Source: Isurus oxyrinchus | Taxonomy: Eukaryota | Direction of reading: 5' to 3' | NCBI GenBank assembly: GCA_026770705.1 | Contig: JANJGN010000009.1 | Location: forward strand, 163,866,001-163,930,000 | Length of the DNA: 64,000 bases | Shown here: positions 761 to 61,366 of the stretch, one piece after another | How the letters are laid out: every line of letters begins with the position of its first letter | How positions within the stretch are numbered: the first letter of the stretch is position 1 | Notes under the pieces: generated by a model | What the model was told of the DNA's origin: nothing | What the model saw: the letters and a program-made list of their open reading frames with translations, nothing else | Databases searched by the model: none | Position numbers and translations under genes: made by a program

Positions 761-797
761 ATGTGGATTTTGATTCTCCTCATTAGTTCTCTGCCCG
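761..797 (+). CDS. Receptor A exon 1, signal peptide (MWILILLISSLP/V)
   Basis: ATG at 761, hydrophobic leader, phase-1 donor G|GTGAGT; joins exon 2 in frame to give LPVSGALW. Confidence 0.9.
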
Positions 798-904
798 GTG
801 AGTGACAGCCAGAGCTGGATGTTCCGATATTCTGAGTTGGTTTAACTCTCGTGCGCTGGTTATACAGGAGATGTTTAAATATTTGGAGACATGCAAAGGC
901 ACAA

Positions 905-1160
905 GAGAGGTCTTGGGCTCAGTGGGTAGTGTCTCTGTATCTGAGCCAGAAGCTCTGTGTTTGAGTCCCACTTCAGTTCTTGTTGAGAATGGAAGGCGCG
1001 TTCTAACCAGGCCCAACAGGTTGATTATCAACCTGAAAATCTTCCAACAGACCTAAGGCTGGTGGGAAGAGGGTTTGAGATCCCAGTGCAACATGTTTGA
1101 TGTGGAGTGGTGCCGCTCATTCTGTTGCCTCCGGAGGTTGTGACCTGTTCCAGGGAAAAC
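905..1160 (+). mobile_element. tRNA-derived SINE remnant in intron 1 (also about 43840-44095)
   Basis: A-box-like gggctcagtggg and B-box-like gtttgagtccc at tRNA spacing. Confidence 0.45.
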
Positions 1161-2659
1161 AAGCTTTGGAAAGCAAAAGTAAACATGTGCTTTGTCTGCC
1201 GCATCCGTCTCTAGATGTGGGAAGTCTCCTAAGTCTAAAGGCACAAAATAGTCAGCAAAACCAAATGAATAATAATTGTGAAATATATTATTACCCTGTG
1301 AATTTACTATCACACCATGGGAATAGTTAACAAATAAACTGAACTGCATTATTAATTATGAATGATAAGTAAAGGAGAATTCAATTTTCAGAAATCTATG
1401 CAAGCAACATTTTGAAAATGAAAACCTGTTTTAATTGGTAATTTTCAATATAATCTGATGTCCAGTATACACTGAAAACTGCAGCGGTAATAATCCCACA
1501 AATAAAACATGTCCCAAGTTGGCGAATATTTCTGTTTTTTAAAGTACAGTTGATGAAATATTGTGTTATGAGGCTCTCTCAGTGACACTGTTCCTCACTG
1601 GTAGATGGTTGGTCTACATCACTCTTCTCATAAGTAGCCTTTTCTTGTTCATTCTTTAACTTTAAGAAACTTGATTTTCCTCATCACTCAGTATTGCCAC
1701 CTCTCCATCATTTTCAATGAATGTATTTTATAACACACAATGTTAAACTCCCAGCCCCATCTGCTCTAAGCCACTACTTTAACTTCCGCAAAATATTTTG
1801 TGCCTCTAGCTTATCAATTTTATGCAGAATACTTGATGTACTTATGGACAGGAAACTGAATCATGTTTCTGTCGGTTTGGCAATCTTCTTCTTTTCAATC
1901 CTTCCTCTTTCTGATCTGATCTCTTTCCCATTTGCTTTTCAACTGTAACTTTTCCTGTATCTTTTTCCTTTTCTTTACTTCTCTCTAGCCATTTAATTAT
2001 TTTCAATCTCTCTTTTGTTATTTTAGTGCAAACTCTTTCTCCACAGCATGAGTTTCTCTCCCAGCAAGGCCATTGGTCTCATGAACGTTCAAGTCAAGGC
2101 ATCCAAATCCCTACCTCAGGAATCCATCCATCCTTCAAGGCCACCTATCACACAACCTCTCAAACCTTCAAGGCCTTCAAATCCTACCTATGGACATCCC
2201 TAACTCATTCAAGATCTGAACACCCCCTCCTGCAAGGACCCAAGCATCCCCCGCACCCCACCCACCTCAGATCAGAGCAGGGAACTGTCGGCTCCTGTGA
2301 CCCCCTCCACACTGCTCCCCAACCAACTGCAAATCAGGCCTGTCAATCAGACTGGTTTCTGGAACCTCTTGATGATGTCATACGCAGTCTGGGGTTAAAC
2401 CCTACAGTATGGGGCAGAACCTCAATTTCCAGGTTCCCCACACTCTACCAACCCCTGCCAATAAGTCAAGAAAATGTCCCAATTATCTCACGAGTATATC
2501 ATTGTCTGAGACGTGCTTTGGAACACAGTGAGGCTCTGATAAGTGTCTATATGAATGATTACTCTCATCACAAACTTGATGGAATTTAACTCATTAAAAT
2601 GCATCTGTTTGAATTAAGCAGTTATTTCCTGTTCAGTTTCTCAAATGTTGTCTCCTCAG

Positions 2660-2974
2660 TTTCAGGTGCATTGTGGGCAAAAAAAGAAGTAACAGGAGTT
2701 GTGGGAAGAGCGATCACAATAGAATGTCACTATGATGCACGTTACAAGTCACATATAAAATATTGGTGTTGCGGCTGGAGTCGCCAGTGTAATATTTTAG
2801 TATTGAAAAATCAGCAAAATGGAAGAATATCGATCACAGATAACAAGGCAACAGGAATATTTATTGTTACTATGGTGGATCTTCACTCAAGAGATACAGG
2901 ATGGTACAGCTGTGGTATTGACAAACCTGGCCTCCTCGATTCAATGTTTGCTGTCTGGCTACAAATATCTTACG
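2660..2974 (+). CDS. Receptor A exon 2, V-type Ig domain of CD300/pIgR/TREM (MDIR-like) type
   Basis: Acceptor tctcctcag|, donor tacg|gtat; ITIECHY...KYWC...C...DTGWYSCG with the extra Cys pair typical of CD300/pIgR V domains. Confidence 0.92.
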
Positions 2975-3873
2975 GTATATTTCTTACTGATTTTCTTTAT
3001 TATTCTCAACTGAAATGTCTGCTCAATGTTTTATCTGGGAGGAAACATGACAGCTCCGATATCCCGAGGCTCCACAGCAATGCAGAGACTTAAAGGTAAA
3101 GGGCAGAGGTCGGGAAATCCAACTCATGTTACCCAAACCCAATTCATGGCCTGTCAAACATGTCAGAGTTGAACTTTACAAGTGAACTAAACGGAAATTG
3201 AGAAGTTGTTTTGATGGTAAAAGAAGCCTCTTTATTAATTGTTGAGACATTGGGCTGGATATTCAGCCTCAAAGCGGGTAGGGGCAATTCGGAAAATTCC
3301 CCGCTCGGCCTTGGAAGAAAGTGCCCACAAAGGTGGGATTTCCATTGCTGGGAGCTGTGCCCAGGCTGCAGTCTGGCCAGCCACACCAGGAAGAAATGCA
3401 GAGGCAGCCACAGGGACTGCCGGCTGCGGAGACGGGCTGTTTCAAAGGCCCCTCCTTAATGCCCTTGGACTTTGTAACAGCTAAACTCAAAACACAAAGG
3501 CCCTTCACCCCTCACCCCCCACAGCCCACAAAGAGGGTGGGTATAAGGGGAAAATTTGTCATGAGAGTTCTTGGAGGTGGGTGGAAGTGTACAGCTTGAA
3601 GTCAGGAGCATGATGGATTATAAGGCGTGGGTAAAGGGACATAGGGGGCATTAACGGCCAAACGTGATGGATGAGGATGTGACTTGACATAGGGGGCATG
3701 AGATGGACCTTTTGAACTTAGCTCTTAAAAGGTCCCCTCATGCAAACCAGTGTTTACAGCTCCTCTGAGGGGCTTTGGACTACGACTCATTCAAAACCTG
3801 GCCCGAGTCCATGAAAATTGCAGAGGAGTAGGACGTGTCCATCTCCACAATGGAGGCAGCCAGGTTGGAGAGT

Positions 3874-6800
3874 AAAAAACAAAAATACAAACAAAAAACT
3901 GCGGATGCTGGAAATCCAAAACAAAAAGTAAGAAATACCTGGAAAAACTCAGCAGGTCTGGCAGCATCGGCGGAGAAGAGCACAGTTGATGTTTCGAGTC
4001 CTGATGACCCTTCAACAGAACTAAGTAAAAAGAAGAGAGGGGTGAAATATAAGCTTGTCTAAGGGGTGGGGGTGGGGGTGCGGGTGGTGAGAGAAGGGGA
4101 GAGGTGGTTGTTGGGACAAGCAAGCAGTGATAGGAGGAGATAACCAAAAGATGTCACAGACAAAAGAACAAAGAGGTGTTGAAGGTGGTGATATTATCTA
4201 AAAGAATGTGCTAATTAAGAACGTATAGCAAGACAAGCAAGGTACAGATAGGTCATGTGGGGGTGGGGTGAAATAAGACTAAAAGGGCATAAAATGTATA
4301 GATAAATGATCAGTGGAATACATTAAAAATATTGCAAATAGGTGGGAAAAGAAAAATCTATATAAATTATTGGAAAAAAGAAAAAGGATGGGGAAGAAAT
4401 GGAAAGAGGGTGGGGATGGAGGAGGGAGTTCAAGATCTAAAATTGTTGATCTCAATATTCAGTCCGGAAGGCTGTAAGGTGCCTAGTCGGAAGATGAGGT
4501 GTTGTTCCTCCAGTTTGCGTTGAGCTTCACTGGAACAATGCAGCAAGCCAAGGACAGACATGTGGGCAAGAGAGCAGGGTGGAGTGTTAAAATGGCAAGC
4601 GACAGGGAGGTTTGGGTCATTCTCTGCGGACAGACCGCAGGTGTTCTGCAAAACAATCACCCAGTCTGCGTTTGGTCTTTCCAATGTAGAGGAAACTGCA
4701 TTGGGAGCAACGAATGCAGTAGACTAAGTTGGGGGAAATGCAAGCGAAATGCTGCTTCACTTGAAAGGAGCGTTTGGGCCCTTGGACGGTGAGGAGAGAG
4801 GAATTGAAGGGGCAGGTGTTGCACCTTTTGCGTGGGCATGGGGAGTTGCCATAGGTGGGGGTTGAGGAGTAGAGGGTGATGGAGGAGTGGACCAGAGTGT
4901 CCCAGAGGGAACGATCCCTATGGAATGCCACCGGGGGGGTGAAAGGAAGATGTGTTTGGTGGTGGCTTCATGCTGGAGTTGGTGGAAATGGCGGAGGATG
5001 ATCCTTTGAATGCGGAGGCTGGTGGGGTGATAAGTGAGGACAAGGGGGACCCTATCATGTTTCTGGGAGGGAGGAGAAGGCGTGAGGGTGGATGCGCTGT
5101 AGATGGGCCAGACACGGTTGAGAGCCCTGTCAACGACCGTGGGTGGAAAACCTCAGTTAAGGAAGAAGGAGGACATCTCAGAGGAACTGTTTTTGAAGGT
5201 AGCATCATCGGAACAGATGCGACGGAGGCAAAGGAACTGGGAGAATGGGAAAGTGTCCTTACAGGAAGCGGGGTGTGAGGAGCTGTAGTCGAGGTAGCTG
5301 TGGGAGTCGGTAGGCTTGTAGTGGATATTGGTTGACAGTCTATCACCAGAGATTGAGACACAGAGGTCAAGGAAGGGAAGGGAAGTGTCAGAGATGGACC
5401 ATTTGAAAATGATGGAGGGGTGGAGATTGGAAGCAAAATTAATAAATTTTTCCAGGTCCAAACGAGAGCATGAAGCGGCACCGAAGTAATCATCAATGTA
5501 CCGGAGAAAGAGTTGTGGGAGTGGGCCGGAATAGGACTGGAACAAGGAATGTTCCACATACCCCATAAAGGGACAGGGGCTCATGTGGGTACCCTTAGTC
5601 ACACCTTTTATTTGGAGGAAGTGAGAGGAGTTGAAGGAGAAATTGTTCAGCGTGAGAACAAGTTCAGCCAGACGGAGGAGAGTAGTGGTGGATGGGGATT
5701 GTTCGGGCATCTGTTCGAGGAAAAAGCTAAGGGCCCTCAGACCATCCTGGTGGGGGATGGAGGTGTAGAGGGATTGGACGTCCATGGTGAAGAGGAAACA
5801 GTTGGGGGCAGGGAACTGGAAATTGTTGATGTGACGTAAGGTGTCAGAGGAATCACGGATGTAGGTGGGAAGGGACTGGACAAGGGCAGAGAAAAAGGAT
5901 TCAAGATAACGAGAAATGAGTTCCGTGGGGCAGGAACAGACTGACACGATCAGTCTGCCGGGACAGTTCTGTTTGTGGATTTTGGGTAGGAGGTAGAAGC
6001 GGGCCGTCCGAGGTTGGGCGACTATCAGGTTGGAAGCTGTGGGAGGAAGATCCCCAGAGGGGATGAGGTCAGTGACAGTCCTGGAAACAATGGCTTGATG
6101 TTCAGTGATGGGGTCATGGTCCATGGAGAGGTCGGAGGAAGTGTCTGCGAATTGACGCTCAGCCTCTGTGAGGTAGAGGCCAGTGCGCCAGACAACAACA
6201 GCACCACCCTTGACAGCGGGTTTGATGACAATGTTGGGGTTGGATCTGAGGGAACGGAGTGCAGTAAGTCACAAAACAACTGTTTGCTGAAATGCTAAAC
6301 AAAGATAAATATTGAGATAAAAGCAAAGAACTGCGGATGCTGGAAATGCAAACCAAAGACAGAAATAGAAATATCTGGAAAAACTCAGCAGGTCTGGCAG
6401 CATCGGTGGAGAAGAGCACAGTTGATGTTTCGAGTCCTCATGACCCTTCAACAGAACTAAGTAACAATAGGAAAGGGGTGAAATATAAGCTGGTTTAAGA
6501 GGAAGGTGGGTGTGTTGTTGGGACAAGAAGCCAGTAATAGGTGGAGATAACCAAAAGATGTCACAGACAAAAGAACAAAGAGGTGTTGAAGGTGGTGATA
6601 TTTTCTAAAGGAATGTGCTAATTAAGGGTAGAAAGCAGGACAAGCAAGGTACAGATAGACCTAGTGGGGGTGGGGTGGGGTGAAGGAATACTAAAAATTC
6701 TAAAAATTAGAGATTAACAGTGGATGGAAATACATTTAAAAATAATGGAAATAGTTGGGAAAAGAAAACTCTATATAAACTATTGGAAAAAACAAAAAGT

Positions 6801-9309
6801 GGAGGAAGAAAACGGAAAGGGGATGGAGATGGTGGTTGGGGCCAGAGAACTGGAAATTGTTGATGTGACATAAGGTGTCAGAGGAATCACGGATGTAGGT
6901 GGGAAGGGACTGGACAAGGGGAGAGCGAAGGGAGTCAAGATAATGAGAATTGAGTTCCGTGGGGCAGGAAGAGGCTGACACGATCAGTCTGCCGGGACAG
7001 TCTTGTTTGTGGATTTTGGGTAGGAGGTAGAAGCGGGCTGTCCGAGGTTGGGAGACTATCAGGTTGGAAGCTGTGGGAGGAAGATCTCCAGAGGAGATGA
7101 GGTCAGTGACAGATCTGGAAACAATGGCTTGATGTTCAGTGGTGGGGTCATGGTCCAGGGAGAGGTAGGAGGAAGTGTCTGCGAGTTGACGCTCAGCCTC
7201 CACAAGGTAGAGGTCAGTGCGCCAGACAACAACTGCACCACCCTTGTCAGCGGGTTTGATGGCAATGTTGGGGTTAGGCCTGAGAGAATGGAGTGCAGTA
7301 TGTTCAGAGAGAGACAGGTTAGAATGGGTGAGAGGAGCAGAGAAATTGAGACGACTAATGTCACGCCGACAGTTCTCAATGAAAAGATCAAGAGAAGGTA
7401 AGAATCCAGAGGGAGGGGTCCAGGTGGAGGGAGAATATTGGAGGTGGGTAAAAGGATCCGTTGAATGGGGAGAGGACTCCTGCCCAAAGAAGTGAGCCCG
7501 GAGACGAAGACGGTGGAAGAAGAGTTCAGCATCATGCCGAGCCCGAAATTCATTGAGGTGAGGACGTAAGGATATGAAACTAAGTCCTTTGCTGAGCACT
7601 GAACGTTCAGCATCAGAGAGGGGAAGGTCAGGGTGTATAGTGAATACCCGACCGGGGCTGGGATTGGAAGATGGTGTGGGGACAGAGGGACAGGCAGGGT
7701 TGGAGGGTCCTGGATGTGTGTTGGTATCACTGAGTTGTTGCAGCTTGCGTTCCTTAGCACTTGAGAGAAAGAGAAAAGGTTTCTTGTTGAGGCGACGGAT
7801 GAGACGAAGAATAGAATGAAACTGGGGGCACGGGCAGCTTTGGAAAGGGGTACGGCGATGCTGCTGGAGGGAGAGGTCGAATGTGTTCATATGGCAGCGC
7901 ATGGCACTGAGTGTGGATCTCAGAATGCAACGGGAACAGTATTCCGAGGAATGTTGTATGTCCCAGAGATACCTGTAATCCTGGGTTGGTTCGAATCCGA
8001 TGGAATTTCAGTTGAGATCCACATGGGGTAAGTCGGAGACGGAGACAGTCACTGAGAAAGGAAATATGGCTGTGAAAGTGGGTTTTAGTAAACACCTTGT
8101 CAAACAGCAGGAGAGAAATGGAAAGCAATGAAGGTAAATAAGGCAAAAGAGAGATATGAAAATCCTGACGGAGAGTAGTACAAAACTTCTTTAAGGTAGG
8201 GATGTCTTGAAGAGAAGTGGCAGTCAATTAAACACGGATAAAAGCAAAAAACTGCGGATGCTGGAAATTCAAAACAAAAACAGAAACATAAATAGCTGGA
8301 AAAACTCAGCAGGTCTGGCAGCATCAGCGGAAAGAGCACAGTTGATGTTTCGAGTCCTCATGACCCATCAACAGAACTAAGTAAAAATAGGAGAGGGGTG
8401 AAATATAAGCTGGTCTAAGGGGTGGGGGTGGGTGGTGGTGGAGGGAGAAGTTGTTGGGACAAGCAAGCAGTGATAGGAGGAGATAACCAAAAGATGTCAC
8501 AGACAAATGAACAAAGAGGTGTTGAAGGTGGCGATATTATCCAAAAGATTGTGCTAATTAAGGATGGGTAGCAGGACAAGCAAGGTACATGGTGGCATCA
8601 TGCTGCAGTTGGAGGCGGAAATGGCGGAGAATGATCCTTTAGTGCGGAGGCTGGTGGAGTGATAAGTGAGGACAAGGGAGACCTCTTCATGTTTCTGGTA
8701 GACTTGCTGCCTTCTTCCAGTGAAGCTCAATGCAAACCGGAGGAACAGCACCTCATCTTCCGACTAGGCACTTTAGAGCCATTGGGACTGAATATTAAGT
8801 TCAACAATTTTAGATCATAAACTCCCTCCTCCATCCCCACCCCCTTTCTGTTTCTTCCCCCTCCTTTTTCCTTTTTCCAATACTTTATATAGATTTTTCT
8901 TTTCCCACCTATTTCCATTATTTTTAATGTATTCCACCGATCATTTATCTATACCTTTTAAGCCCTTTAAGTCTTATTTCACCCCACCCTCCACTAGAGC
9001 TATCTGTACCTTGATTGTCCTGCTATCCATTCTTAATTAGCACATTCTTTTAGATGATGTCACCACATTCAACACCTCTTTGTTCTTTTGTCTGTGACAT
9101 CTTTGGGTTATCGCCTCCTATCACTGCTTGCTTGTCCCAACAACTACCGCCGACTTCTCTCTCCACCGCCCCCCCCGCCCCCCGACCCATTAGACCAGCT
9201 TATATTTCACCCCTTTCCTATTTTTACTTCGTTCTGTTGAAGGGTCATAAGGACTCTAAATGTCAACTGTGCTCTTCTCCGCCGATGCTGCCAGACCTGC
9301 TGAGTTTTT
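3874..9309 (-). mobile_element. Composite Penelope-like element (Neptune type): partial-tandem ORF pieces, three pseudo-LTRs and one inverted pseudo-LTR
   Basis: RT with YIDD (5153-6124), CxxxxCxxC linker and GIY-YIG endonuclease (LVYCIRC..C..LYIGKT, 4430-4931), N-terminal ORF part 6830-8240; 14-bp TSD ccaggttgg(a/g)gagt at 3860-3873 and 9310-9323; frameshifted and deleted. Confidence 0.93.
3984..4022 (-). ncRNA. Minimal type I hammerhead-ribozyme motif in Penelope pseudo-LTR (also 6420-6458 and 8340-8378; B copies 46918-46956, 49354-49392, 51274-51312)
   Basis: agtt-CTGTTGA-a-gggtc-loop-gactc-GAAA-ca-TC-aact; stems I and II pair. Confidence 0.6.
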
Positions 9310-9692
9310 CCAGGTTGGGGAGTTCTGGGTGTGGCTTTTGAATGAGCCAGCCTGTATCCTTTAAAGCTGCTCCCAAAATCACACAACCCAGGAACGCAGT
9401 TGGGAATCCCAGAATTAGGACACACCCGCCATTTTTAAAGGGCTCCTGAATCAACCCAAGTTGGTGAAATCCAGGCCGTCACTTTGGTCTGAAGGCTGCA
9501 CAAAGCACAGGGTAGAGGCCCTGGACTGAGACACCTGCCTTTATCTTGTACAGAAAGTGTTCACATGTGAGTGACATGAACATTGCTCATCAAAACAAGG
9601 AGCGATAGGCAGGGAGACATTCTTTGGAGTTTATTGACAATAATGAACAGTATGTACAAGTGATTAACACCCGTGCCCAGGACGTGCAACTG

Positions 9693-9764
9693 GCCTAAAT
9701 AGCCAAGTGGTTATGGTACTGGGTTTGTAACCCCAAGATCAGGAATTCAAATCTCACAATGGCA
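9693..9764 (+). pseudogene. tRNA-Thr(UGU)-like pseudogene or SINE head (duplicate 52625-52696)
   Basis: 72 nt, A box TAGCCAAGTGG, anticodon arm ggg-tt-TGT-aa-ccc, TTCAAATC T-loop; acceptor stem pairs only 3 of 7. Confidence 0.6.
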
Positions 9765-9824
9765 AAATATGAAACAATGTAACTTGATCTGAATAGGAAC
9801 AGATGGAAATGTGTTTGTACTCAA

Positions 9825-11091
9825 AAGAGTTACATTTCCTCAACTCTCGAGGCCTTCCGTGCTCAGTGGGGACTGGGGTGCTTTATTGACCCCTTTTAGC
9901 ACTTTTTGGTTTAAAGTTGTAAGTTTCCTTTAAACTTCGTTCTTGGTTTTACAGCTGACCTAAATTAGGGGCTGTCCCTTATTTATCCTAATTTTGTAAA
10001 TTTAGTTTAATTGTTTTGACTCTATAAGAGTTACATCTCCTCAACCCCCGTAATATGAGCCGCCTCGGGGACATGTTCTCTGTGCCATTTGGCACAGCAA
10101 AGAGGAGCTTTTTGTACGGACTGCTGCTGCACATCTTCCATTTTCTCGCCCTTCTCCGCCGCCTGGATATGCCCTGGCATGCCTTGTTGCCTTCCGGCAG
10201 CGGAGGCCCCCGATGGGAGGCCCTCTGAGGAGGTGTCCTCCCCCTTTCTATCGGGGACCTGGGTTCGAGGGTGTTGCATGCAGCAGTCCCCTATAATAGG
10301 AGAATTCATAGGTTCACGGACTCCCAAGACACATGCCCTTTTCGTGGTCTTGTGGAGTCCGTGGACCATGCATACATAGGGTGTGGTAGGTTGCACTCCC
10401 TTTTCAGTTACTTGATGAACCTTTTGTTAATGTTTTGTTTGCACTTCAGCCCCACGCTCCTGATCTATGGACACCCGGTGCGGAAGGGGGTCGGAAAGGA
10501 GGAGGACCTCCTCGTGAACCTGCTCCTGGGCCTGGCCAAGTTGGCCATTAACAGGTCCAGGCAGCAGGCGATCGAAGGGGGAGTCCCGCCCAATTATTTA
10601 TCCCTCTTCCGCGGCTACGGTCGCAGCCGGATGTCCCTGGAAAGGGAGCATGCGGTGTCTGCCGGCACTCTCGAACCCTTCCGTGCTCGGTGGGCACCGC
10701 GGGGACTGGGGTGTTTTGTTGACCTCTTTTATCACATTTTGGTTTAAAGTTGTAAGTTTCCTTCAAACTTTGTTCTTGGTTTTACAGCTGACCTGAATTA
10801 GGGGCTGTGCCTGATTTATCCCAATTTTGTTAATTTAGTTTAATTGCTTTGACTCTATAAGAGTTACATCTCCTCAACTCTCGAGACCTTCTGTGCTCGA
10901 TGGGTGACCACGGGGGTTGGGGTGCTTTATCCAGCCTCTTAATCACATTTTGGTTTGATGTTGTAAGTTTCCTTTAAATCCTGTCTTTGGTTTTGCAGTG
11001 ACCCTAACTTAGGGGCTGCGTTTTATTCTGTTCCTCATTTTGTTAATTTAGTTTATTTGTTTGGCTTTAAAAGAGCTACATCTTCTCAACT
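9825..11091 (+). mobile_element. Three tandem 5'-truncated Tx1-clade non-LTR retrotransposon 3' ends separated by a 21-bp direct repeat
   Basis: ORF2 C-terminus CPF.G..ESVDHAYIGC..L..LF...NLLLGLAKLAI..SR; shared T-rich 3'UTR; repeat aagagttacatctcctcaact x4. Confidence 0.8.
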
Positions 11092-12622
11092 TTCCTAATC
11101 CTCCCGCTACATCTTGGTGCTCCGCAGACATCCAGAGTGGAAGTAAAGACAGTCTGCAGACTGCTATGCTCTGTCTGTGATAATTTTTGGCGGGCGTCCT
11201 CTGGAGGCCTGAGGCCTGGAGGGCCCCGGCTTCCTTTCGAGGTCCTGCTGTGTGGCATTACCACCCTCCTTGGCCTGTGGACCTGGAGCTGTCAAGGTCA
11301 CAGTAAGAGGGGAGTTACCAGGATGAATGGCCCCGGAGGGTACACATGTTGATCCTTCTCGCTATTGGCTGAATTAGCGAGCAGCAGGGGTAGCTGAAGT
11401 GAGATTGAGCTGCCCGCACCCCTCTCTCATACACACTGTCAGGGGCCAACTATACATCAGCAATGGAGTTCAGCCCCACAGCAGTGTAGGAACGGTGCCC
11501 TGGACCAACATCTCCAAGGCACCTACGATCCTACCAGTGTTGACCTTGGTGCATTGACATGCCAGCGCTATCACCTCAGAGTGCAGGTGGATGGATTCCT
11601 CCATATTAACTGAAAATTTTATTTAAAAAGAGAGAAGGTCACCATCTAATCCTTTATTAACTGTGTTTAATTGTATGCAGTGGTAGCATTAAACAGATGT
11701 CTTCAGGTCTGGGCCTTGTACACACTGTCTCCTGGGAGTTCTGACCAGCTACCCTGCTGTCTTCAGGGAGATCTGGCCAACCATCCTGCTGTGTTCTGGG
11801 AGATCTAAGCAGCTACCCCCTCACATAGGCTTCAGTATTCCCTTAAATGTGTTTCTTCTCTTTCATCTCTCTTTGTTGCAACCAGTCTGAAAAGAAATGC
11901 TTTTCTTCAAAGGATTGATTAAATCAATCTTTACCTCTTAGACTTGTAAAAACAAACTTACTCTATGTTTATGTCACGTCCTTACACCTTTTTACAACCT
12001 GCATATATCTCCCTTTGAACTAAAACAACACAATTCAAACTATTTCTGTTATTGCTTCATGTACAAGTCTGTTGTAGTTCTTTTTTGTTTATTAACATAT
12101 CAAAACCACTTCAAATTGTTGACTTTTGACCCTATCCACTGATGAGGCAGTCCATGTCATGGAACCATAACCTTAAATCTGGAGATAGGCTCGTCAGGGA
12201 TGTCAGGAATCACTTCTTCACGCAAAGTATAGCGGAAATCAGGAACACTCTCCTCAAAAAAGCTCTTGAACTTAAATGAAAATTTCAAAACTGATTGACA
12301 GATTTTATCTGGTAGCAATATTCGGGTTATGGGACCCCGGTAGGTAAATGGACAGAAGATACTGGTCAGTTGGGATTTAATTGAATTGTGGAACAGGCTG
12401 AAGGGGCTGCATGTCCGAATCCCTTTTCCATGTTCTGGAGCCCCAGTTAATTTTTCAGTGGTCTGGGCCTTGTGAGTAACAATGTGCTGTGAAACAAGCT
12501 CACAAACAGTTAGCATTTCAAAGAGACACTTTCCAATCACCAGGCAAACTGTGACCTGTGTTGTTTCAGAGTACAGTTTGTGACAGTGAAAGCAGTGAAG
12601 GCCTGCCAAACCTCATTAAAAT

Positions 12623-12762
12623 CAAGTTCTGTCGAAGGGTCATGAGGACTCGAAACGTCAACTCTTTTCTTCTCCATCGATGCTGCCAGACCTGCTGAGT
12701 TTTTCCAGGTAATTCTGTTTTTGTTTTGGATTTCCAGCATCCGCAGTTTTCTTTGTTTTTAT
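12623..12762 (+). mobile_element. Short Penelope pseudo-LTR 3' fragment with hammerhead motif at 12625-12663 (duplicate 55549-55688)
   Basis: 11-bp TSD ctcattaaaat at 12612-12622 and 12763-12773. Confidence 0.85.
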
Positions 12763-34608: not shown

Positions 34609-34611
34609 AGG

Positions 34612-43694: not shown

Positions 43695-43731
43695 ATGTGG
43701 ATTTTGATTCTCCTCATTAGTTCTCTGCCCG
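43695..43731 (+). CDS. Receptor B exon 1, signal peptide
   Basis: Identical to 761-797. Confidence 0.9.
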
Positions 43732-49800: not shown

Positions 49801-52241
49801 GACGTAAGGTGTCAGAGGAATCACGGATGTAGGTGGGAAGGGACTGGACAAGGGGAGAGCGAAGGGAGTCAAGATAATGAGAATTGAGTTCCGTGGGGCA
49901 GGAAGAGGCTGACACGATCAGTCTGCCGGGACAGTCCTGTTTGTGGATTTTGGGTAGGAGGTAGAAGCGGGCCGTCCGAGGTTGGGAGACTATCAGGTTG
50001 GAAGCTGTGGGAGGAAGATCTCCAGAGGAGATGAGGTCAGTGACAGATCTGGAAGCAATGGCTTGATGTTCAGTGGTGGGGTCATGGTCCAGGGAGAGGT
50101 AGGAGGAAGTGTCTGCGAGTTGACGCTCAGCCTCCACAAGGTAGAGGTCAGTGCGCCAGACAACAACTGCACCACCCTTGTCAGCGGGTTTGATGGCAAT
50201 GTTGGGGTTAGGCCTGAGAGAATGGAGTGCAGTATGTTCAGAGAGAGACAGGTTAGAATGGGTGAGAGGAGCAGAGAAATTGAGACGACTAATGTCACGC
50301 TGACAGTTCTCAATGAAAAGATCAAGAGAAGGTAAGAATCCAGAGGGAGGGGTCCAGGTGGAGGGAGAATATTGGAGGTGGGTAAAAGGATCCGTTGAAT
50401 GGGGAGAGGACTCCTGCCCAAAGAAGTGAGCCCGGAGACGAAGACGGTGGAAGAAGAGTTCAGCATCATGCCGAGCCCGAAATTCATTGAGGTGAGGATG
50501 TAAGGGTATGAAACTAAGTCCTTTGCTGAGCACTGAACGTTCAGCATCAGAGAGGGGAAGGTCAGGGTGTATAGTGAATACCCGACCGGGGCTGGGATTG
50601 GAAGATGGGGTGGGGACAGAGGGACAGGCAGGGTTGGAGGGTCCTGGATGTGTGTTGGTATCACTGAGTTGTTGCAGCTTGCGTTCCTTAGCACTTGAGA
50701 GAAAGAGAAAAGGTTTCTTGTTGAGGCGACGGATGAGACGAAGAATAGAATGAAACTGGGGGCACGGGCAGCTTTGGAAAGGGGTACGGCGATGCTGCTG
50801 GAGGGAGAGGTCGAATGTGTTCATATGGCAGCGCATGGCACTGAGTGTGGATCTCAGAATGCAACGGGAACAGTATTCCGAGGAATGTTGTATGTCCCAG
50901 AGATACCTGTAATCCTGGGTTGGTTCGAATCCGATGGAATTTCAGTTGAGATCCACATGGGGTAAGTCGGAGACGGAGACAGTCACTGAGAAAGGAAATA
51001 TGGCCGTGAAAGCGGGTTTTAGTAAACACCTTGTCAAACACCAGGAGAGAAATGGAAAGCAATGAAGGTAAATAAGGCAAAAGAGAGATATGAAAATCCT
51101 GACGGAGAGTAGTACAAAACTTCTTTAAGGTAGGGATGTCTTGAAGAGAAGTGGCAGTCAATTAAACACGGATAAAAGCAAAAAACTGCGGATGCTGGAA
51201 ATTCAAAACAAAAACAGAAACATAAATAGCTGGAAAAACTCAGCAGGTCTGGCAGCATCAGCGGAAAGAGCACAGTTGATGTTTCGAGTCCTCATGACCC
51301 ATCAACAGAACTAAGTAAAAATAGGAGAGGGGTGAAATATAAGCTGGTCTAAGGGGTGGGGGTGGGTGGTGGTGGAGGGAGAAGTTGTTGGGACAAGCAA
51401 GCAGTGATAGGAGGAGATAACCAAAAGATGTCACAGACAAATGAACAAAGAGGTGTTGAAGGTGGTGATATTATCCAAAAGATTGTGCTAATTAAGGATG
51501 GGTAGCAGGACAAGCAAGGTACATGGTGGCATCATGCTGCAGTTGGAGGCGGAAATGGCGGAGAATGATCCTTTAGTGCGGAGGCTGGTGGAGTGATAAC
51601 TGAGGACAAGGGAGACCTCTTCATGTTTCTGGGAGACTTGCTGCCTTCTTCCAGTGAAGCTCAATGCAAACCGGAGGAACAGCACCTCATCTTCCGACTA
51701 GGCACTTTAGAGCCATTGGGACTGAATATTAAGTTCAACAATTTTAGATCATAAACTCCCTCCTCCATCCCCACCCCCTTTCTGTTTCTTCTCCCTCCTT
51801 TTTCCTTTTTCCAATACTTTATATAGATTTTTCTTTTCCCACCTATTTCCATTATTTTTAATGTATTGCACCGATCATTTATCTATACCTTTTAAGCCCT
51901 TTAAGTCTTATTTCACCCCACCCCCACTAGAGCTATCTGTACCTTGATTGTCCTGCTATCCATTCTTAATTAGCACATTCTTTTAGATGATGTCACCACA
52001 TTCAACACCTCTTTGTTCTTTTGTCTGTGACATCTTTGGGTTATCGCCTCCTATCACCGCTTGCTTGTCCCAACAACTACCGCCGACTTCTCTCTCCACC
52101 GCCCCCCCACCGGCCGACCCATTAGACCAGCTTATATTTCACCCCTTTCCTATTTTTACTTCGTTCTGTTGAAGGGTCATAAGGACTCTAAATGTCAACT
52201 GTGCTCTTCTCCGCCGATGCTGCCAGACCTGCTGAGTTTTT
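46808..52241 (-). mobile_element. Duplicate of the composite Penelope-like element
   Basis: Same structure and junctions as 3874-9309. Confidence 0.93.
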
Positions 52242-52756
52242 CCAGGTTGGGGAGTTCTGGGTGTGGCTTTTGAATGAGCCAGCCTGTATCCTTTAAAGCT
52301 GCTCCCAAAATCACACAACCCTGGAACGCCGTTGGGAATCCCAGAATTAGGACACACCCGCCATTTTTAAAGGGCTCCTGAATCAACCCAAGTTGGTGAA
52401 ATCCAGGCCGTCACTTTGGTCTGAAGGCTGCACAAAGCACAGGGTAGAGGCCCTGGACTGAGACACCTGCCTTTATCTTGTACAGAAAGTGTTCACATGT
52501 GAGTGACATGAACATTGCTCATCAAAACAAGGAGCGATAGGCAGGGAGACATTCTTTGGAGTTTATTGACAATAATGAACAGTATGTACAAGTGATTAAC
52601 ACCCGTGCCCAGGACGTGCAACTGGCCTAAATAGCCAAGTGGTTATGGTACTGGGTTTGTAACCCCAAGATCAGGAATTCAAATCTCACAATGGCAAAAT
52701 ATGAAACAATGTAACTTGATCTGAATAGGAACAGATGGAAATGTGTTTGTACTCAA

Positions 52757-54023
52757 AAGAGTTACATTTCCTCAACTCTCGAGGCCTTCCGTGCTCAGTG
52801 GGGACTGGGGTGCTTTATTGACCCCTTTTAGCACTTTTTGGTTTAAAGTTGTAAGTTTCCTTTAAACTTCGTTCTTGGTTTTACAGCTGACCTAAATTAG
52901 GGGCTGTCCCTTATTTATCCTAATTTTGTAAATTTAGTTTAATTGTTTTGACTCTATAAGAGTTACATCTCCTCAACCCCCGTAATATGAGCCGCCTCGG
53001 GGACATGTTCTCTGTGCCATTTGGCACAGCAAAGAGGAGCTTTTTGTACGATCTGCTGCTGCACATCTTCCATTTTCTCGCCCTTGTCCGCCGCCTGGAT
53101 ATGCCCTGGCATGCCTTGTTGCCTTCCGGCAGCGGAGGCCCCCGATGGGAGGCCCTCTGAGGAGGTGTCCTCCCCCTTTCTATCGGGGACCTGGGTTCGA
53201 GGGTGTTGCATGCAGCAGTCCCCTATAATAGGAGAATTCATAGGTTCACGGACTCCCAAGACACATGACCTTTTCGTGGTCTTGTGGAGTCCGTGGACCA
53301 TGCATACATAGGGTGTGGTAGGTTGCACTCCCTTTTCAGTTACTTGATGAACCTTTTGTTAATGTTTTGTTTGCACTTCAGCCCCACGCTCCTGATCTAT
53401 GGACACCCGGTGCGGAAGGGGGTCGGAAAGGAGGAGGACCTCCTCGTGAACCTACTCCTGGGCCTGGCCAAGTTGGCCATTAACAGGTCCAGGCAGCAGG
53501 CGATCGAAGGGGGAGTCCCGCCCAATTATTTATCCCTCTTCCGCGGCTACGGTCGCAGCCGGATGTCCCTGGAAAGGGAGCATGCGGTGTCTGCCGGCAC
53601 TCTCGAACCCTTCCGTGCTCGGTGGGCACCGCGGGGACTGGGGTGTTTTGTTGACCTCTTTTATCACATTTTGGTTTAAAGTTGTAAGTTTCCTTCAAAC
53701 TTTGTTCTTGGTTTTACAGCTGACCTGAATTAGGGGCTGTGCCTGATTTATCCCAATTTTGTTAATTTAGTTTAATTGCTTTGACTCTATAAGAGTTACA
53801 TCTCCTCAACTCTCGAGACCTTCTGTGCTCGATGGGTGACCACGGGGGTTGGGGTGCTTTATCCAGCCTCTTAATCACATTTTGGTTTGATGTTGTAAGT
53901 TTCCTTTAAATCCTGTCTTTGGTTTTGCAGTGACCCTAACTTAGGGGCTGCGTTTTATTCTGTTCCTCATTTTGTTAATTTAGTTTATTTGTTTGGCTTT
54001 AAAAGAGCTACATCTTCTCAACT
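52757..54023 (+). mobile_element. Duplicate of the Tx1 tandem array
   Basis: Matches 9825-11091. Confidence 0.8.
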
Positions 54024-57000
54024 TTCCTAATCCTCCCGCTACATCTTGGTGCTCCGCAGACATCCAGAGTGGAAGTAAAGACAGTCTGCAGACTGCTATG
54101 CTCTGTCTGTGATAATTTTTGGCGGGCGTCCTCTGGAGGCCTGAGGCCTGGAGGGCCCCGGCTTCCTTTCGAGGTCCTGCTGTGTGGCATTAGCACCCTC
54201 CTTGGCCTGTGGACCTGGAGCTGTCAAGGTCACAGTAAGAGGGGAGTTACCAGGATGAATGGCCCCGGAGGGTACACATGTTGATCCTTCTCGCTATTGG
54301 CTGAATTAGCGAGCAGCAGGGGTAGCTGGAGTGAGATTGAGCTGCCCGCACCCCTCTCTCATACACACTGTCAGGGGCCAACTATACATCAGCAATGGAG
54401 TTCAGCCCCACAGCAGTGTAGGAACGGTGCCCTGGACCAACATCTCCAAGGCACCTACGATCCTACCAGTGTTGACCTTGGTGCATTGACATGCCAGCGC
54501 TATCACCTCAGAGTGCAGGTGGATGGATTCCTCCATATTAACTGAAAATTTTATTTAAAAAGAGAGAAGGTCACCATCTAATCCTTTATTAACTGTGTTT
54601 AATTGTATGCAGTGGTAGCATTAAATAGATGTCTTCAGGTCTGGGCCTTGTACACACTGTCTCCTGGGAGTTCTGACCAGCTACCCTGCTGTCTTCAGGG
54701 AGATCTGGCCAACCATCCTGCTGTGTTCTGGGAGATCTAAGCAGCTACCCCCTCACATAGGCTTCAGTATTCCCTTAAATGTGTTTCTTCTCTTTCATCT
54801 CTCTTTGTTGCAACCAGTCTGAAAAGAAATGCTTTTCTTCAAAGGATTGATTAAATCAATCTTTACCTCTTAGACTTGTAAAAACAAACTTACTCTATGT
54901 TTATGTCACGTCCTTACACCTTTTTACAACCTGCATATATCTCCCTTTGAACTAAAACAACACAATTCAAACTATTTCTGTTATTGCTTCATGTACAAAT
55001 CTGTTGTAGTTCTTTTTTGTTTATTAACATATCAAAACCACTCCAAATTGTTGACTTTTGACCCTATCCACTGATGAGGCAGTCCATGTCATGGAACCAT
55101 AACCTTAAATCTGGAGATAGGCTCGTCAGGGATGTCAGGAATCACTTCTTCACGCAAAGTATAGCGGAAATCAGGAACACTCTCCTCAAAAAAGCTCTTG
55201 AACTTAAATGAAAATTTCAAAACTGATTGACAGATTTTATCTGGTAGCAATATTCGGGTTATGGGACCCCGGTAGGTAAATGGACAGAAGATACTGGTCA
55301 GTTGGGATTTAATTGAATTGTGGAACAGGCTGAAGGGGCTGCATGTCCGAATCCCTTTTCCATGTTCTGGAGCCCCAGTTAATTTTTCAGTGGTCTGGGC
55401 CTTGTGAGGAACAATGTGCTGTGAAACAAGCTCACAAACAGTTAGCATTTCAAACTTTCCAATCACCAGGCAAACTGTGACCTGTGTTGTTTCAGAGTAC
55501 AGTTTGTGACAGTGAAAGCAGTGAAGGCCTGCCAAACCTCATTAAAATCAAGTTCTGTCGAAGGGTCATGAGGACTCGAAACGTCAACTCTTTTCTTCTC
55601 CATCGATGCTGCCAGACCTGCTGAGTTTTTCCAGGTAATTCTGTTTTTGTTTTGGATTTCCAGCATCCGCAGTTTTCTTTGTTTTTATCTCATTAAAATG
55701 TTGGTGAAAGTGTCACTTTTCTCTGGCTAATCCCTTGACCAAAGAGGGAATTTTAATTCCCCTCCCCCATCCTGCATCGTGTTGAGGCATGATGGGATTT
55801 GCTGGATCCAGAACCTTCTCCAGCACGGCTTGTGATCCAGGAGACACACGAAAGCTTCGCCCCCCCACCCCCAGGCAAATGTTTTATACAATTTCTCCCT
55901 CCCCATGATTGGCCAATCCTGCCCCAAGCAGCAAAGTCACCCTGACTCCCTCCTCGCTGTTGTGCTCCGAGGCAACATTCCCACCAATTTCCAAACTTTT
56001 ACCATAACGTTCCTACTTGGAAACCAGCCAAACATTCAATCAGTGTGCAAGAATTCTGGTGAGATTTTGCTGTTAAATTCGGCACAAACTCAACATTCCT
56101 GGTATTTCCAGCTTTCTCACCACCCCACACACAGTCCCCCCTCTCGTCTCCACGTACCAGGGTTGAAGTGTTCTATCGCAGCATGCAGAGAACCAGAGCC
56201 AATCACATTTACATTCTTATCCAAAGCTACAAAACATGTAACCGATATCTGACAACATTTTGCCCTCATTTTACCCTTTGCTTTTCTAAGATTCTCTCCA
56301 ACCAATTCACATTCAACTCACAAACAATGAAGTAGCATTGGAGGCTCACTACCAGCTACGAAGAGATATTGTTCACCATCATATTCATGTTAACATACTC
56401 TCAGTATCATAGCTGCTGTTCTGATCTGGAGACCTGATATGTTCTGATATAATGGCTGAAAGGGTAACTCAGGCCTCTAAGAGGATGGAGAGATATGGGG
56501 ATGGATTTTTAAAAAGTATGGTGTCAGGATTAGAGATGGGTGGGTGTGAAATTTGACACCGCTGGTCTCCATGCCAATTTACTGTTACAATCCCAAGCCC
56601 GAAACATTTAGAAAGCAGGCGGCTTGCAGTCAAGTGGTGGGCAGCTAACTTAGGAAATAACATTTACCAAAGGGGCCAATTAAAGACCCATTCCTGCGCC
56701 CACTGGGATTTCATTCAGCAATGCAAGCAGACCACATTACCCCTTCAGGATCATGGCCCGGCAGCTGCCGGGTTTTGAAACATAAAATAAACTTACCTGG
56801 ACTTTCCCCTTGCTGTCTCCATGCTCAGGTCAGCAACTCCCACCTCACCTGGTGAGGCCCTCTAGCATCAGGAGCCCGCCCTCTGTCCCTGATTGGAAGG
56901 TGAGCCAGTTCCAGTCTTTTGATTGGCAAGAACATTGAAAATTGCAGTGGGCATGCCTAAAGAATGGTGAATGGTGTCAGGACCTGAAACAATCTCCCAT

Positions 57001-57159
57001 GTCCAGTTCCCAAACCCAAATTTAACATCCACCCCATAGAGTGGTAGATGTGTTGGTGAGATTCCAACATGGCAGAGCCTGGCTGAGATGAAGTGCAAAG
57101 TTTGAAGAGTATTTGATTATTAAATGTTCAGTATCTGAATGTTTCTTTGTTTCCAACAG

Positions 57160-57489
57160 AACCCGTGTCTGTTCCTGTGCTTAGATTTTCATCACCAGCA
57201 AATGTCTCATGTTCTGGGGGTTCAGTGTCCGTCTCCTGTGAGTCTGTCCAGGGATCCCTTCCCATTCAGTACACATGGTATGAAAAGAACCTGTCTGAAG
57301 ATTCAAAGATCTCTGACACCAAGAAACTGGATCTACATTGTCAATCCTTCAAACAGCAACATCATCAATATTACTGCACAGCCTCGAATAATCAGGGAGT
57401 AAAATCCAGTGACACTGTCACTGTTAACTCAACACTCATGAATGTAACAACGAAAAGCTACAGTTATGTGATACAAATTGGAAACATTG
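57160..57489 (+). CDS. Receptor B exon 3, C2-type Ig domain
   Basis: As exon 3 of A except DTNKL>DTKKL; splice sites intact. Confidence 0.92.
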
Positions 57490-59813
57490 GTAAGTGTTAC
57501 TTTCTACAAACAACGTGGCGAATGAATGTTTTAAATTCATGTCTATCCAAACTGGTCACTGTTTCAGTTCCTTCAGTTTATCTGAGAAATTGCAACTGGC
57601 CAAATTCACTCTCTCTGGTTCCTCAAACATTCTGAACAAGGTCACTAAGTTGCATTTTTCATGAAAAATGGACAGGATCAGAAAATATCCCCAAAACATG
57701 CAAAAATATTGCCGAATCTCCAATAAACCCATCGAATCAAAATAGCATTTGATTGACAGAGCTTTCATAAAGTAATTTGTCTATTTCCAGCAGATGGAAT
57801 TGTGAAATGCAACCTCCAACTGTTGTGTCCTAGTTTGGGAAGGATATCACTGATAGAATAGAGAAGAATTGAATTAAAATGAACCCTTGGATGAGAGGTT
57901 TTAGTCATGAGGAAAGTATCATCACAACTGAGGTGAATGACCAGCTGGAGGACGTGGAAATTGTTAGAAATTTGGATAAGGTAACTCTAACTATTTCCAC
58001 TAGTCAGTGAGTCAGCAACAAGAGAGCATTAACTTTAAAATTATCACTAAAAGGACAAAGGGAGAAATTTGGAGAATTTTATTGATGCAAACTGTTTTTA
58101 GGACATGGAATGCCCAACTGAAATAAGTTTACAAACAAATTTAATAATAGATTTTAAAAGGGAAACAAATGTATGAGGGTGTGGGAAAAGGACAATGAAA
58201 TGGAATTAAATGAGGAGATCATTCAGAGAACCAGCATTCGAGTGATGGGCTGAATTCCCTCCCCTGTGTTGTAAAAATTCCATCATTCCAGTCAAAATCT
58301 CAAATTATCCTGTATAAAAAATTAACTATTCGCTCCCCATAAAACAATGACCCTGGTTCTGAAACAAGGATGACTTTAGCCTATTTGAATGTAGCGGTTC
58401 AATTTTCTGCAGAGTGGGTGCAGCATGTTCACTGAGAAACACCAACATGGGCACAAAACAAAGAGAATCACATTTTCACCTGAGCAGCAGGAGACAGGAA
58501 TTTACATATGCAAATATATTGACTCTGGTCATGTGGTCTCTTGCCTCAGTCGTCAGGGAAGAAGGGTGGAATTTTACACCCCCATTGCGGCAGGGACTGG
58601 GCTGTAAAATGCAGCCAGCCATTCTAAACTCCATGCACTCCAGCAGGACCATAAAATCCAACTGTCACAAGGCTCAGACCAAAGGCTGTCAGCAGCAGGT
58701 AGAAATTACACCTGTAAACTGTGTTTGTACTGGAGTTGTCAGCAGGGACTCAGTTGCACTCTGACCTTTGATGCCAGTCTTTTGTAGTTACAAGTTCCCC
58801 TTAAGAGTTAAAATTCGGGCTGATACCATGATCCAGCTCTGAGGTAGTGCTATACTGGTGGTGGTGCTGCTGTGTAGATGAGGTATTAAACTGAGGATCC
58901 ACATCCCCCTTAGGTAGATGTAAACATTTCCAGGGTATTATTCACAGAATAGGGAAGTTCTCCTGGCGTCCTTGAAGCCTTTATTCCTCAACCAATACAC
59001 ACAAATTGGGAGCAGGAGCAGGCCATTTGGTCTTTTGAGCCTGTTAATGTCACTACAAAACAGATCATCTAGTGAATGTTTTACTGATGTTTGTGGGGCT
59101 TTGCTGTGTACGAATTAACTTCCACGTTTCTTGATATTAAAACTGTGGCTTTACTTCAAAAAAGTACTTCATAGGCTCTGAAGCACTTTGGAATATCCCA
59201 AGGTTGTGAAAGGTGATGAATCAACACAACTTGTTTCTTACTTTTTGAAACAAACCATTTATTAAAATACATCTGAAACAATTATCTGAGTGCAAACTGC
59301 AGGGGGGGGAGGGGGAGGGAGGAGCCAGTCCCAGCAGCAAGGTGGTCATTATAATTAAATGGTCAGAAAATCACTGGCAGGTTTGAGACATTCATGGTCA
59401 GTGGGTGAAGATTGTCATCTTTACTGCAAGCTCAGAAAACTGCCCCCAAAGTGCAGAAAGTGACCATTGCCAGTATTAGGATGTGACTGTTTAATGTGTT
59501 CACATGAAATTCATGTCAAGAAAGTGTATCTCTGGATTGCAGTCCACCAACTTGAGCCCTTATCAGGCCCACTAGTAACTCTGTCCCACCAACTCTCAGA
59601 TATAGGAAAGAAAGTGAAATTACCAGTAAAGATAGACCACCAGGTATCAGCAACCTCTCCACTTGTGACCAGAGAGGGGTAAATTACACAGAAATCAATT
59701 CTACCAGCCAGGCTTTTCCTCAATTAATGAGGTTCCATTTGACAATGATGCTCTCTCAGTTGAATACAAGTGAAAATGAGGTGAATCTGAATGTTATTCC
59801 CTTGTGTCAACAG

Positions 59814-59931
59814 GACGTGAGTATTGTTGTGAAGCTTGTACAAGAGTATCACCAACTACATATTTGACAAGTACAGATATAATTTCCACTACCAATCGAG
59901 CCACAACTTCAGATCCCGAAAATGCTGAAAG
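59814..59931 (+). CDS. Receptor B exon 4, stalk (GREYCCEACTRVSPTTYLTSTDIISTTNRATTSDPENAE)
   Basis: Same length and splice sites as A exon 4; 10 substitutions. Confidence 0.85.
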
Positions 59932-60742
59932 GTACAATGTTCTCATGGATTGGCATTGCTTCCATATGTGAGAGATACAATTGGCCAAAGGAGTGAAAGT
60001 TGTTCATTAATTGTAAAGTAGCTCATCAGAATGGAAATGGTGGCTGGGTTTATATCATGCTGTTGTGTTAGCTTCTTAATGAGGCTGCATTTTTCTGTTG
60101 GAAAATACAAGCAAGGAGTGAGCTTTTCCATTGTGTTGCCGCTCAGATGGTGTTTTTTGCCTTATTCACCTTGATTACTTCACCGCTAAGGTAATCTCAC
60201 AGTGTGTGAGGAGTTGTACTTGTCAAACTTACCTTGCTGCTGTCTACACTGACAGAGTACTTGTATTTGGGCTGATGAAAAGGAAGAATTAGCGTGATAT
60301 ATCTGCACATCCCTTGGTTTCACTAATGAGAGACATCTTGCAACTCTGGTCCCATTTCCATATTATTAGCCTAAGCTGTTGACAATAAGTAGCAGAAATT
60401 GTAGTCCGATGTAAACACTCAGGAATCAGGTCTTTGAAGTTACAATGGTGATAAAGAGAAAATGCCAACTAAATGTCAAACAGAAAGAGGGACAGTTGGA
60501 AATGGACAGCAGGTATGTCCGCAGCTGTGGAGAAAATAAACACGTTCATGGTTTGGGTGCAGACACTTCTTCAGAATTCTAGTCCACACACGAAGCGAAG
60601 CAGGTCCACTCACCCCACAGATCCCAACTGAGCTGCTGAATGTTTCCAGAATCTTCTGTTTTCCATTCATATTTCTAGCACATGCAGTGCTCTTACTTTT
60701 ATCCAGATTATTGTCAATGATTTAAAAAGGATTGAAAGTCTA

Positions 60743-61020
60743 TGGTCTGAATTTTCCGCTCGGCGGGGGTGGGGGTGGGGTAGAGCGGGAGCGAGCACGG
60801 GCAGCTGTGGACCCCATCGCCATCCACCATTGGGTTTTTGACGCCATTTTGCGCGGGCGGCCAATTTAGGCCATCCCAGCGTATTTCCCGGCTCCCGAGG
60901 ATAGCGGCAGTGGGCGAGAAGCGGGGAGTGTGCACAGACAACCGGGTCCAATGGTGACCCAGCGGCCTGTTTAAATGAAGGCCTGGCAGCCTGTTCCAGC
61001 TGCTCACAATGGCCAGTGCA
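60743..61020. mobile_element. Truncated Harbinger-type MITE at the duplication breakpoint
   Basis: Begins ggtctgaattttcc (family TIR), GC-rich body; no right TIR found. Confidence 0.55.
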
Positions 61021-61275
61021 AAGAATTTTCACTTACAATTTAGCTTTGTATTACAGTTAGACATTATGGACATGCTAAAGAAATTTGCTTCGTTTGATTT
61101 TTATCTAACGATCATGAAGTTGATAAGTAAAACTTTAGCTGATTCTTTCAGCTAAAGTCCCTTGTCTACTTTATGTTGCTGCAAAAAATTACAGTGTAAA
61201 GCAGAGAGTCATGTTTCAAAAATGAAACAGTCTCATTTCATTTAAATGGTTTGATATTTCTTCTCTTTTGCTCAG

Positions 61276-61366
61276 TTACATTATCTGGGATGTGATACGC
61301 TGGGTGCTCTTTACTCTCCTGGTGATTTGTGCTGTTTCAGGCACATGGTGTACGAGAAAATCTAAG
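61276..61366 (+). CDS. Receptor B exon 5, transmembrane helix with charged residues (SYIIWDVIRWVLFTLLVICAVSGTWCTRKSK), activating type
   Basis: ttctcttttgctcag| acceptor in phase 2 matching exon 4; aag|gtgaga donor; hydrophobic helix with Arg near its N-terminal end; no similarity to A exon 5. Confidence 0.8.

Follow-up and report, generated by a model that had tools for sequence, protein, structure and literature searches.

Paired immune receptors of the Siglec-5/14, KIR, LILR, PIR, and SIRP types display near-identical outer domains, whose likeness is maintained by gene conversion or recent duplication, that are joined either to a cytoplasmic tail with immunoreceptor tyrosine-based inhibitory motifs (ITIMs) or to a charged transmembrane (TM) segment, which binds an adaptor with an activation motif (ITAM). 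Such receptors are usually discussed for mammals. Here, the same design is described with genomic detail in a shark family, in a 64-kb stretch of Isurus oxyrinchus DNA (JANJGN010000009.1) that was analyzed as a whole and is referred to as the window; all coordinates are relative to it. Two immunoglobulin (Ig) receptor genes, A and B, lie 43 kb apart on the same strand of one scaffold, with an assembly gap in between. They probably form an inhibitory/activating pair of MDIRs (modular domain immune-type receptors) with a recently copied or homogenized 17.8-kb front and opposite predicted signaling. The locus is plainly a further case of a familiar design, within a known family, and not a new kind of system. 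As in the mammalian pairs, the homology boundary falls between the ectodomain and the signaling exons; the mammalian receptors belong to unrelated Ig-domain families, and the resemblance is one of design only.

The skate MDIRs were reportedly described by Cannon et al. in 2006, in Immunogenetics 58:362 (as cited in PMC3031540), and the family is said to be known mainly from skate cDNAs. As in A and B, a CD300/pIgR-like V domain stands at the N terminus with a C2 domain next to it, and the family is a multigene one with ITIM and charged-TM forms. Skate MDIR2 (416 residues) resembles A in its architecture, uncharged TM, and tyrosine-bearing tail, while skate MDIR5 resembles B in ending in a W-x-V-G-R-W TM module. 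Unlike in the skate comparison, the present genes are from a shark, and both signaling types share a 17.8-kb genomic cassette (>99% identical over 15 kb). MDIRs have been characterized as multigene activating and inhibitory receptors related to CD300, TREM, and pIgR (PMC3031540). Nothing specific on shark CD300/MDIR paired receptors was found in the literature searched, a coverage outside which the 2006 MDIR description falls.

CD300 receptors carry the same type of V domain, with an extra WC...C disulfide, and occur in one cluster as ITIM-bearing (CD300a and CD300f) and charged-TM members (CD300b, c, d, and e). However, the V domain of CD300 proteins stands alone, without C2, whereas that of A and B is followed by a C2/Ig_3 domain, and the activating CD300 TM segments mostly use Lys or Glu. 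The resemblance does not establish orthology. An earlier note on this DNA had called the pair CD300-like, which holds for the V domain and fails for the V-plus-C2 architecture. Similarly, pIgR domains are the best matches of known structure for the V exon, and many homologues are automatically named pIgR-like, but mammalian pIgR has four or five V-type domains in tandem, a long tail without ITIMs, an uncharged TM, and no C2 domain, in contrast to the V-C2 arrangement of A and B with an ITIM tail or Arg-bearing TM. The pIgR name in annotations is a similarity label.

A Duplicated Front Shared by Two Receptor Genes

Self-BLAST of the window returned a single dominant direct repeat, in which 1-17813 (copy 1, + strand) matches 42936-60755 (copy 2, + strand, the front of gene B) with 98.6% identity across 17.8 kb. 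The cassette contains 760 bp of 5′ flank, four exons (for the leader, V domain, C2 domain, and stalk), and some of intron 4. Copy 1 begins at window position 1, and thus its 5′ end is cut by the window start. By self-comparison, the DNA between the copies and beyond copy 2 is unrelated except for dispersed repeat fragments. MAFFT alignment of the copies yields 198 substitutions and 39 gap columns in 17,797 bp, and these are distributed in a stepped manner: divergence is 0.81% across the first 15 kb, rises to 3.06% at a maximum-likelihood change point near 15.3 kb (likelihood ratio 72), and gives way to an abrupt end of homology at ∼17.8 kb, within intron 4 and 3′ of the stalk exon. This profile bears out the claim of the earlier note that the ligand-binding part was copied or homogenized recently. 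A DNA contig from a run of a separate study (X3, 60710-60858, 11 differences) spans the 3′ breakpoint of gene B at 60755, making it less likely that this assembly alone contains a chimeric join there. No breakpoint repeats able to mediate exchange were found, the only element there being a short interspersed one at 18064-18387. The transition-to-transversion count among the 198 substitutions (1-17797 vs. 42936-60739) is 101:97, unusually low for neutral divergence in vertebrates.

Within the cassette, the leader exons (761-797 in A, comprising the ATG and leader and ending in phase 1; 43695-43731 in B) differ at 0 nt, and the V exons (2660-2974 and 45594-45908) are identical at 315/315 nt, as the earlier note had claimed. 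The A leader followed by VSG matches homologues. The C2 exons (14232-14561 and 57160-57489) differ at 2 nt, resulting in the one residue change that had been noted, N172K, with Lys in B and 99% identity overall. The stalk exons (16871-16988 and 59814-59931) behave differently: 10/118 nt differ, all 10 changes are non-synonymous, and 29/39 residues (74%) are identical. This is three times the difference in the flanks (10/118 vs. 50/1679; Fisher p = 0.005). The B stalk contains three Cys, whereas that of A contains one, and the NRS glycosylation site of A is absent from B. Thus, the description of the ectodomains as virtually identical stands for V and C2 and does not extend to the stalk. When the stalk changes were polarized by eye against a great white shark homologue, at least five fell on the B side, including the new Cys and the loss of NRS. 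The V exon also encodes WCCGW (2800-2815), with an extra Cys where nearly all homologues have WCHGW; this Cys, located beside the CD300-type second disulfide, is possibly unpaired.

Gene A Encodes a Tail of the Inhibitory Type

Gene A consists of seven GT-AG exons with an open frame of 417 residues. In both genes, the phase at the 3′ end is 1 for each of exons 1-3 and 2 for the stalk exon, and all have AG/GT sites. Downstream of the stalk, exon 5 (18486-18574, +) encodes an uncharged TM, SLIYIVLGVLGG..., that is 90-93% identical to the TM of inhibitory homologues in catshark and great white shark, and the junction 16988>18486, one of two that the earlier note had put forward for checking, is compatible, at the sequence level, with the splice sites and reading frame. 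Exon 6 (20665-20717, +; 53 nt, phase 1 to 0, with AG/GT sites) encodes a small cytoplasmic segment and was found by tblastn with homologues because all inhibitory homologues carry that segment. Exon 7 (21348-21659, +; stop codon 21657-21659) encodes the tail, which is 52-62% identical to shark inhibitory tails.

Four tyrosines lie in this tail: Y325 in TVYANV, of the immunoreceptor tyrosine-based switch motif (ITSM) type; Y353 in ITYAAV and Y382 in VIYSGV, both ITIMs; and Y412 in AIYATV, which is ITIM-like. As motif matches, ITYAAV and VIYSGV fit [SIVL]xYxx[IVL], and TVYANV fits TxYxx[IV]. The uncharged TM and four-tyrosine ITIM/ITSM tail that had been claimed for A can therefore be read directly in exons 5 and 7. 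A six-exon model of A, joining 18574 to an alternative in-frame acceptor at 21358, was replaced, as homologues carry the extra segment of ∼18 residues. A shorter isoform that skips exon 6 and uses the AG at 21356-21357 (region 21346-21358) would keep the ITIM frame and is possible. Earlier guesses for the C2 donor, 14515 and 14534, were ruled out by an RNA joint on copy B that sets the exon end at 14561/57489.

Gene B Encodes a Transmembrane Module of the Activating Type

The stalk exon of B is followed by exon 5 (61276-61366, +), which is 91 nt long, ends in phase 0 before the donor GTGAGA, and encodes a TM with Arg and Asp, SYIIWDVIRWVLF...TRKSK. The full exon reads SYIIWDVIRWVLFTLLVICAVSGTWCTRKSK and contains WDVIRW. 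It has no significant similarity to the A TM exon, in agreement with the claim that B continues into an unrelated, Arg-bearing TM, and is 87% identical to the corresponding segment of a 304-residue small-spotted catshark protein (XP_038676045), which ends 15 residues after the TM exon. Within the window, neither a second copy or relic of the A-type TM/ITIM exons near B nor a B-type TM exon near A was found.

Transcript support was assessed with read contigs covering the 3′ half of B, 57100-63099. Likely-RNA contigs match the exons at ≥99%, so their source is this species or one very close to it. The joints 57489>59814 and 59931>61276, both GT..AG, are present in contigs of runs X1, X2, and X9, and the second of these is the junction that the earlier note had put forward for checking. 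Across the stalk and TM exons of B, the contigs show 0-1 differences, where the A stalk would give 10.

Two likely-RNA contigs extend 167 and 289 nt beyond 61366 onto sequence absent from 57100-63099, placing the last exon of B further downstream. This exon is located downstream of 63099 and probably outside the window. A tblastn search of 61300-64000 with the tails of four homologues gave chance-level matches only, and the best of these, at 63100-63132, was rejected because the single acceptor in its vicinity does not keep the frame. The terminal exon is difficult to find because high-copy repeats follow the TM exon. They begin ∼45 bp 3′ of it (61412-63099), where the summed word depth of X3 contigs ranges from thousands to ∼100,000. 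If the TM donor is read through (61340-61531), 31 residues are added without tyrosine signaling motifs before a stop.

Membership in the MDIR Family

The V exon matches Pfam V-set (1.2e-8), and the C2 exon matches Ig_3 (1.5e-7) and Ig_2. Among PDB entries, the V exon is closest to pIgR domains (5.5e-40 summed over four), and it also matches CD300f (1.4e-16), CD300a (8e-13), NKp44, and TREM2. The V-domain motif KYWCCGWSRQC supplies the additional WC...C cysteine pair of CD300/pIgR/TREM-like domains. A search of 1.84 billion representatives with the V exon returned 2,194 matches with top identities of 60-67%. All named relatives are from cartilaginous fish, where the family is already present in public annotations under the misleading automatic names pIgR-like, CMRF35-like, FcRL5, and CXADR-like. 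Also among the named relatives are the clearnose skate proteins Modular domain immune-type receptor 2 and 5. Skate MDIR2 (P0197) is 62% identical in V and 59% in C2, and skate MDIR5 (P0160) is 66% identical in V, 70% in C2, and 58% in TM; both have the V-then-C2 order. In protein collections that contain no Isurus oxyrinchus proteins, the nearest protein is a great white shark entry with 80-84% identity in V and C2. The matches include dozens of shark and ray proteins, and both the ITIM and the charged-TM types are present in at least 15 shark and ray species, as befits a multigene family. Judged by their sequences, A and B are members of the cartilaginous-fish MDIR family. The earlier designation as MDIR-like can thus be raised to membership, given the skate MDIR2 and MDIR5 matches (58-70% identical in V and C2), which have A-type and B-type membrane modules, respectively.

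Conserved Signaling Modules and Shuffled Ectodomains

Both signaling modules are conserved well beyond Isurus. Between the B TM exon and its skate and manta counterparts, identity is 58%, and in 20 distinct shark and ray segments V7, R9, W10, and L16 of the activating TM are invariant, while the Asp position holds D, K, S, N, or E. The search pattern for these segments allowed R/K and V/I/L and thus accounts for only part of the invariance. The Arg is both present and conserved in the B TM; homologues continue into tails of 13-25 residues, and the tail exon of B itself lies outside the window. On the inhibitory side, the four-tyrosine layout is also found in a chimaera (Callorhinchus) protein.

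The ectodomains follow a different pattern. When shark C2 domains of the membrane-proximal position are placed on a tree, signaling type requires at least seven changes among 25 typed rows, at least four of them forced by well-supported branches, and clusters no more than shuffled labels do. Activating and inhibitory sisters from the same species occur in Heptranchias (branch support 95), Scyliorhinus (94), and the Isurus window pair (99), and a tree of V domains displays the same mixing of signaling types. Ectodomain identity within species is 65-67% in Chiloscyllium punctatum and Scyliorhinus, the C. punctatum pair having consecutive locus tags (0012807 and 0012808) and nearly identical V domains. 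It is 80-82% in the bamboo/epaulette shark comparisons and 86% in Heptranchias, and the Isurus window pair is the extreme case. Since both modules are conserved in sharks and rays and the ectodomains group by lineage, ectodomain exchange recurs; that is, on the evidence of these trees, two old signaling modules repeatedly acquire the same ectodomain.

The locus therefore offers a clean breakpoint between binding and signaling, two conserved modules, and ectodomains that change partner repeatedly. It may serve for studying the age of adaptor-coupled activation, the adaptor of the conserved Arg motif, and a possible role of pathogens in the matching of ectodomains. We regard the recurrent ectodomain exchange and the conserved Arg motif as its most worthwhile parts.

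A more far-reaching proposal is that the cassette, with its 3′ boundary fixed in intron 4, is a standing exchange unit copied repeatedly among at least three or four alternating activating and inhibitory genes, and that no older paired-receptor system is known in which concerted evolution keeps the members matched. Under this proposal, which we hold to be tentative and rather doubtful, ectodomain swapping between two modules with an age above 300 million years seems to take place in all shark lineages examined. If true, the V-x-R-W motif would mark an adaptor interface of cartilaginous fish that is experimentally uncharacterized.

Origin and Proposed Signaling of the Pair

The pair most likely originated in an old neighborhood of activating and inhibitory genes, where unequal crossing-over or gene conversion recently replaced the front of one gene with that of the other, as far as intron 4. 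The two levels of divergence (0.8%, then 3%) suggest that two or more exchanges, unequal in length, took place.

The two proteins would display the same V-C2 binding surface. By analogy with characterized receptors, tyrosine phosphorylation in A would recruit SH2 phosphatases through the ITIM/ITSM motifs and dampen the cell. In B, which by homology would have a short tail, the Arg in the outer third of the TM, part of the V-x-R-W module conserved in elasmobranchs, would pair with an adaptor of the FcR-gamma or DAP12 type, bearing an acidic TM and an immunoreceptor tyrosine-based activation motif, and lead to activation. What we infer from this arrangement is opposite signaling, recruitment of phosphatases and adaptors, one ligand for both receptors, and a possible rationale of pathogen-driven selection or decoy. 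The earlier note had proposed the paired-receptor design, and its elements were recovered: similar ectodomains in linked genes with the same V-C2, an inhibitory member with ITIMs (as motifs), an Arg-bearing TM in the other, and spliced contigs across the B junction.

Several points weigh against this reading. The terminal exon and stop codon of B lie beyond the view of the window. The Asp three residues before the Arg in the B TM might neutralize it, although this Asp is not conserved in rays. Splicing and expression of A are predicted from sequence, the read check having covered only 57100-63099 of B, and the adjacency and order of A and B are only as scaffolded, with the gap between the genes. 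The contigs are labeled "RNA?", their RNA status being guessed, and come from three runs of one sample; they cannot separate B from a twin copy of the same type. Low-depth contigs of the likely-RNA runs cross the B TM donor unspliced (61340-61442), and unspliced B forms thus exist, while one likely-RNA contig has seven differences in the C2 exon, which indicates that other paralogues are expressed. No binding data for any MDIR were found in the literature. Lastly, exons 1-3 have two differences where 5.7 are expected (P = 0.08) and are not significantly closer than the introns, and nothing shows selection for matched ectodomains.

This last point bears on the possibility that the cassette is a young neutral duplicate, a chance copy in a birth-and-death cluster in which one or both genes are unmatched and maybe decaying. 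Coding-exon identity is no higher than the intron background predicts: zero differences in leader plus V (352 nt) have a probability of 0.054 given 0.83% divergence in non-coding DNA, so conservation does not exceed background, and the identity of V and of exons 1-3 reflects recency rather than demonstrable selection. The family is also large with fast turnover, and the 3′ end of B is out of view. Nevertheless, neither frame is interrupted and the splice sites are intact, B-type RNA is spliced, and similar-ectodomain activating/inhibitory pairs recur in several shark lineages. The stalk, with its 10/10 amino-acid changes at three times the flank rate, is unlike the simple decay of an unused copy. 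We thus consider a neutral duplicate unlikely.

It is also quite improbable that B is not an adaptor-coupled activator, being instead a signaling-poor decoy that competes for ligand, or a protein whose Arg and Asp serve another partner or self-association. In the shark TM, an Asp precedes the Arg by three residues, which would fit such a role, and the three stalk Cys, compared to one in A, suggest disulfide-linked forms. Against this, the Arg is the same in all shark and ray segments compared, whereas the residue at the Asp position changes, which is the pattern expected of an adaptor contact, and mammalian receptors of the FcR-gamma-type arrangement have their Arg in the outer third. A survey from 2014 (PMC4016189) reported sharks to be without FcR-gamma, a point in favor of a non-activating B, and nothing specific on FCER1G/TYROBP in sharks was found in the literature searched.

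An assembly artefact, with A and B representing either the two haplotypes or one contig that was falsely duplicated and set in tandem around the gap, would agree with copies that are >99% identical over 15 kb on either side of a gap, but it is very improbable given that the copies end in different, individually conserved signaling modules, diverge along a gradient with a sharp breakpoint instead of by a uniform allelic difference, are bridged at the B breakpoint by the DNA contig of another study, and have a counterpart in the adjacent activating and inhibitory genes annotated in C. punctatum.

Repeats and Surrounding Sequence

Intron 2 (2975-14231, 11.3 kb) is packed with retroelement fragments common to both cassette copies. 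These include a reverse-transcriptase open reading frame (ORF) on the minus strand (5156-6268), whose match to Pfam RVT_1 falls short of the gathering score, as well as inverted and direct repeats inside the intron (3937-4547/8703-9315 and 5801-6269/6835-7303).

Between the genes, a tandem array at 34600-36100 is rich in GC, has a strong G skew, and yields long acidic ORFs of the EVEAVTEE type on its + strand; it probably represents a satellite and not a gene. A series of + strand ORFs at 39354-42411, ending just before copy 2 of the cassette starts at 42936, has the look of a long interspersed nuclear element and a FADD-type motif in translation, with no Pfam match at 1e-3.

The assembly gap (37466-37600) is the only N run in the window and is intergenic, 15.8 kb 3′ of the A stop codon and 6.1 kb 5′ of the B ATG at 43695, with a non-coding left flank. 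Neither gene has an exon or reading frame across it, so neither gene model is affected. A CA-rich minisatellite with a 72-bp period (37601-38396) begins directly where the gap ends on the right and is its likely cause.

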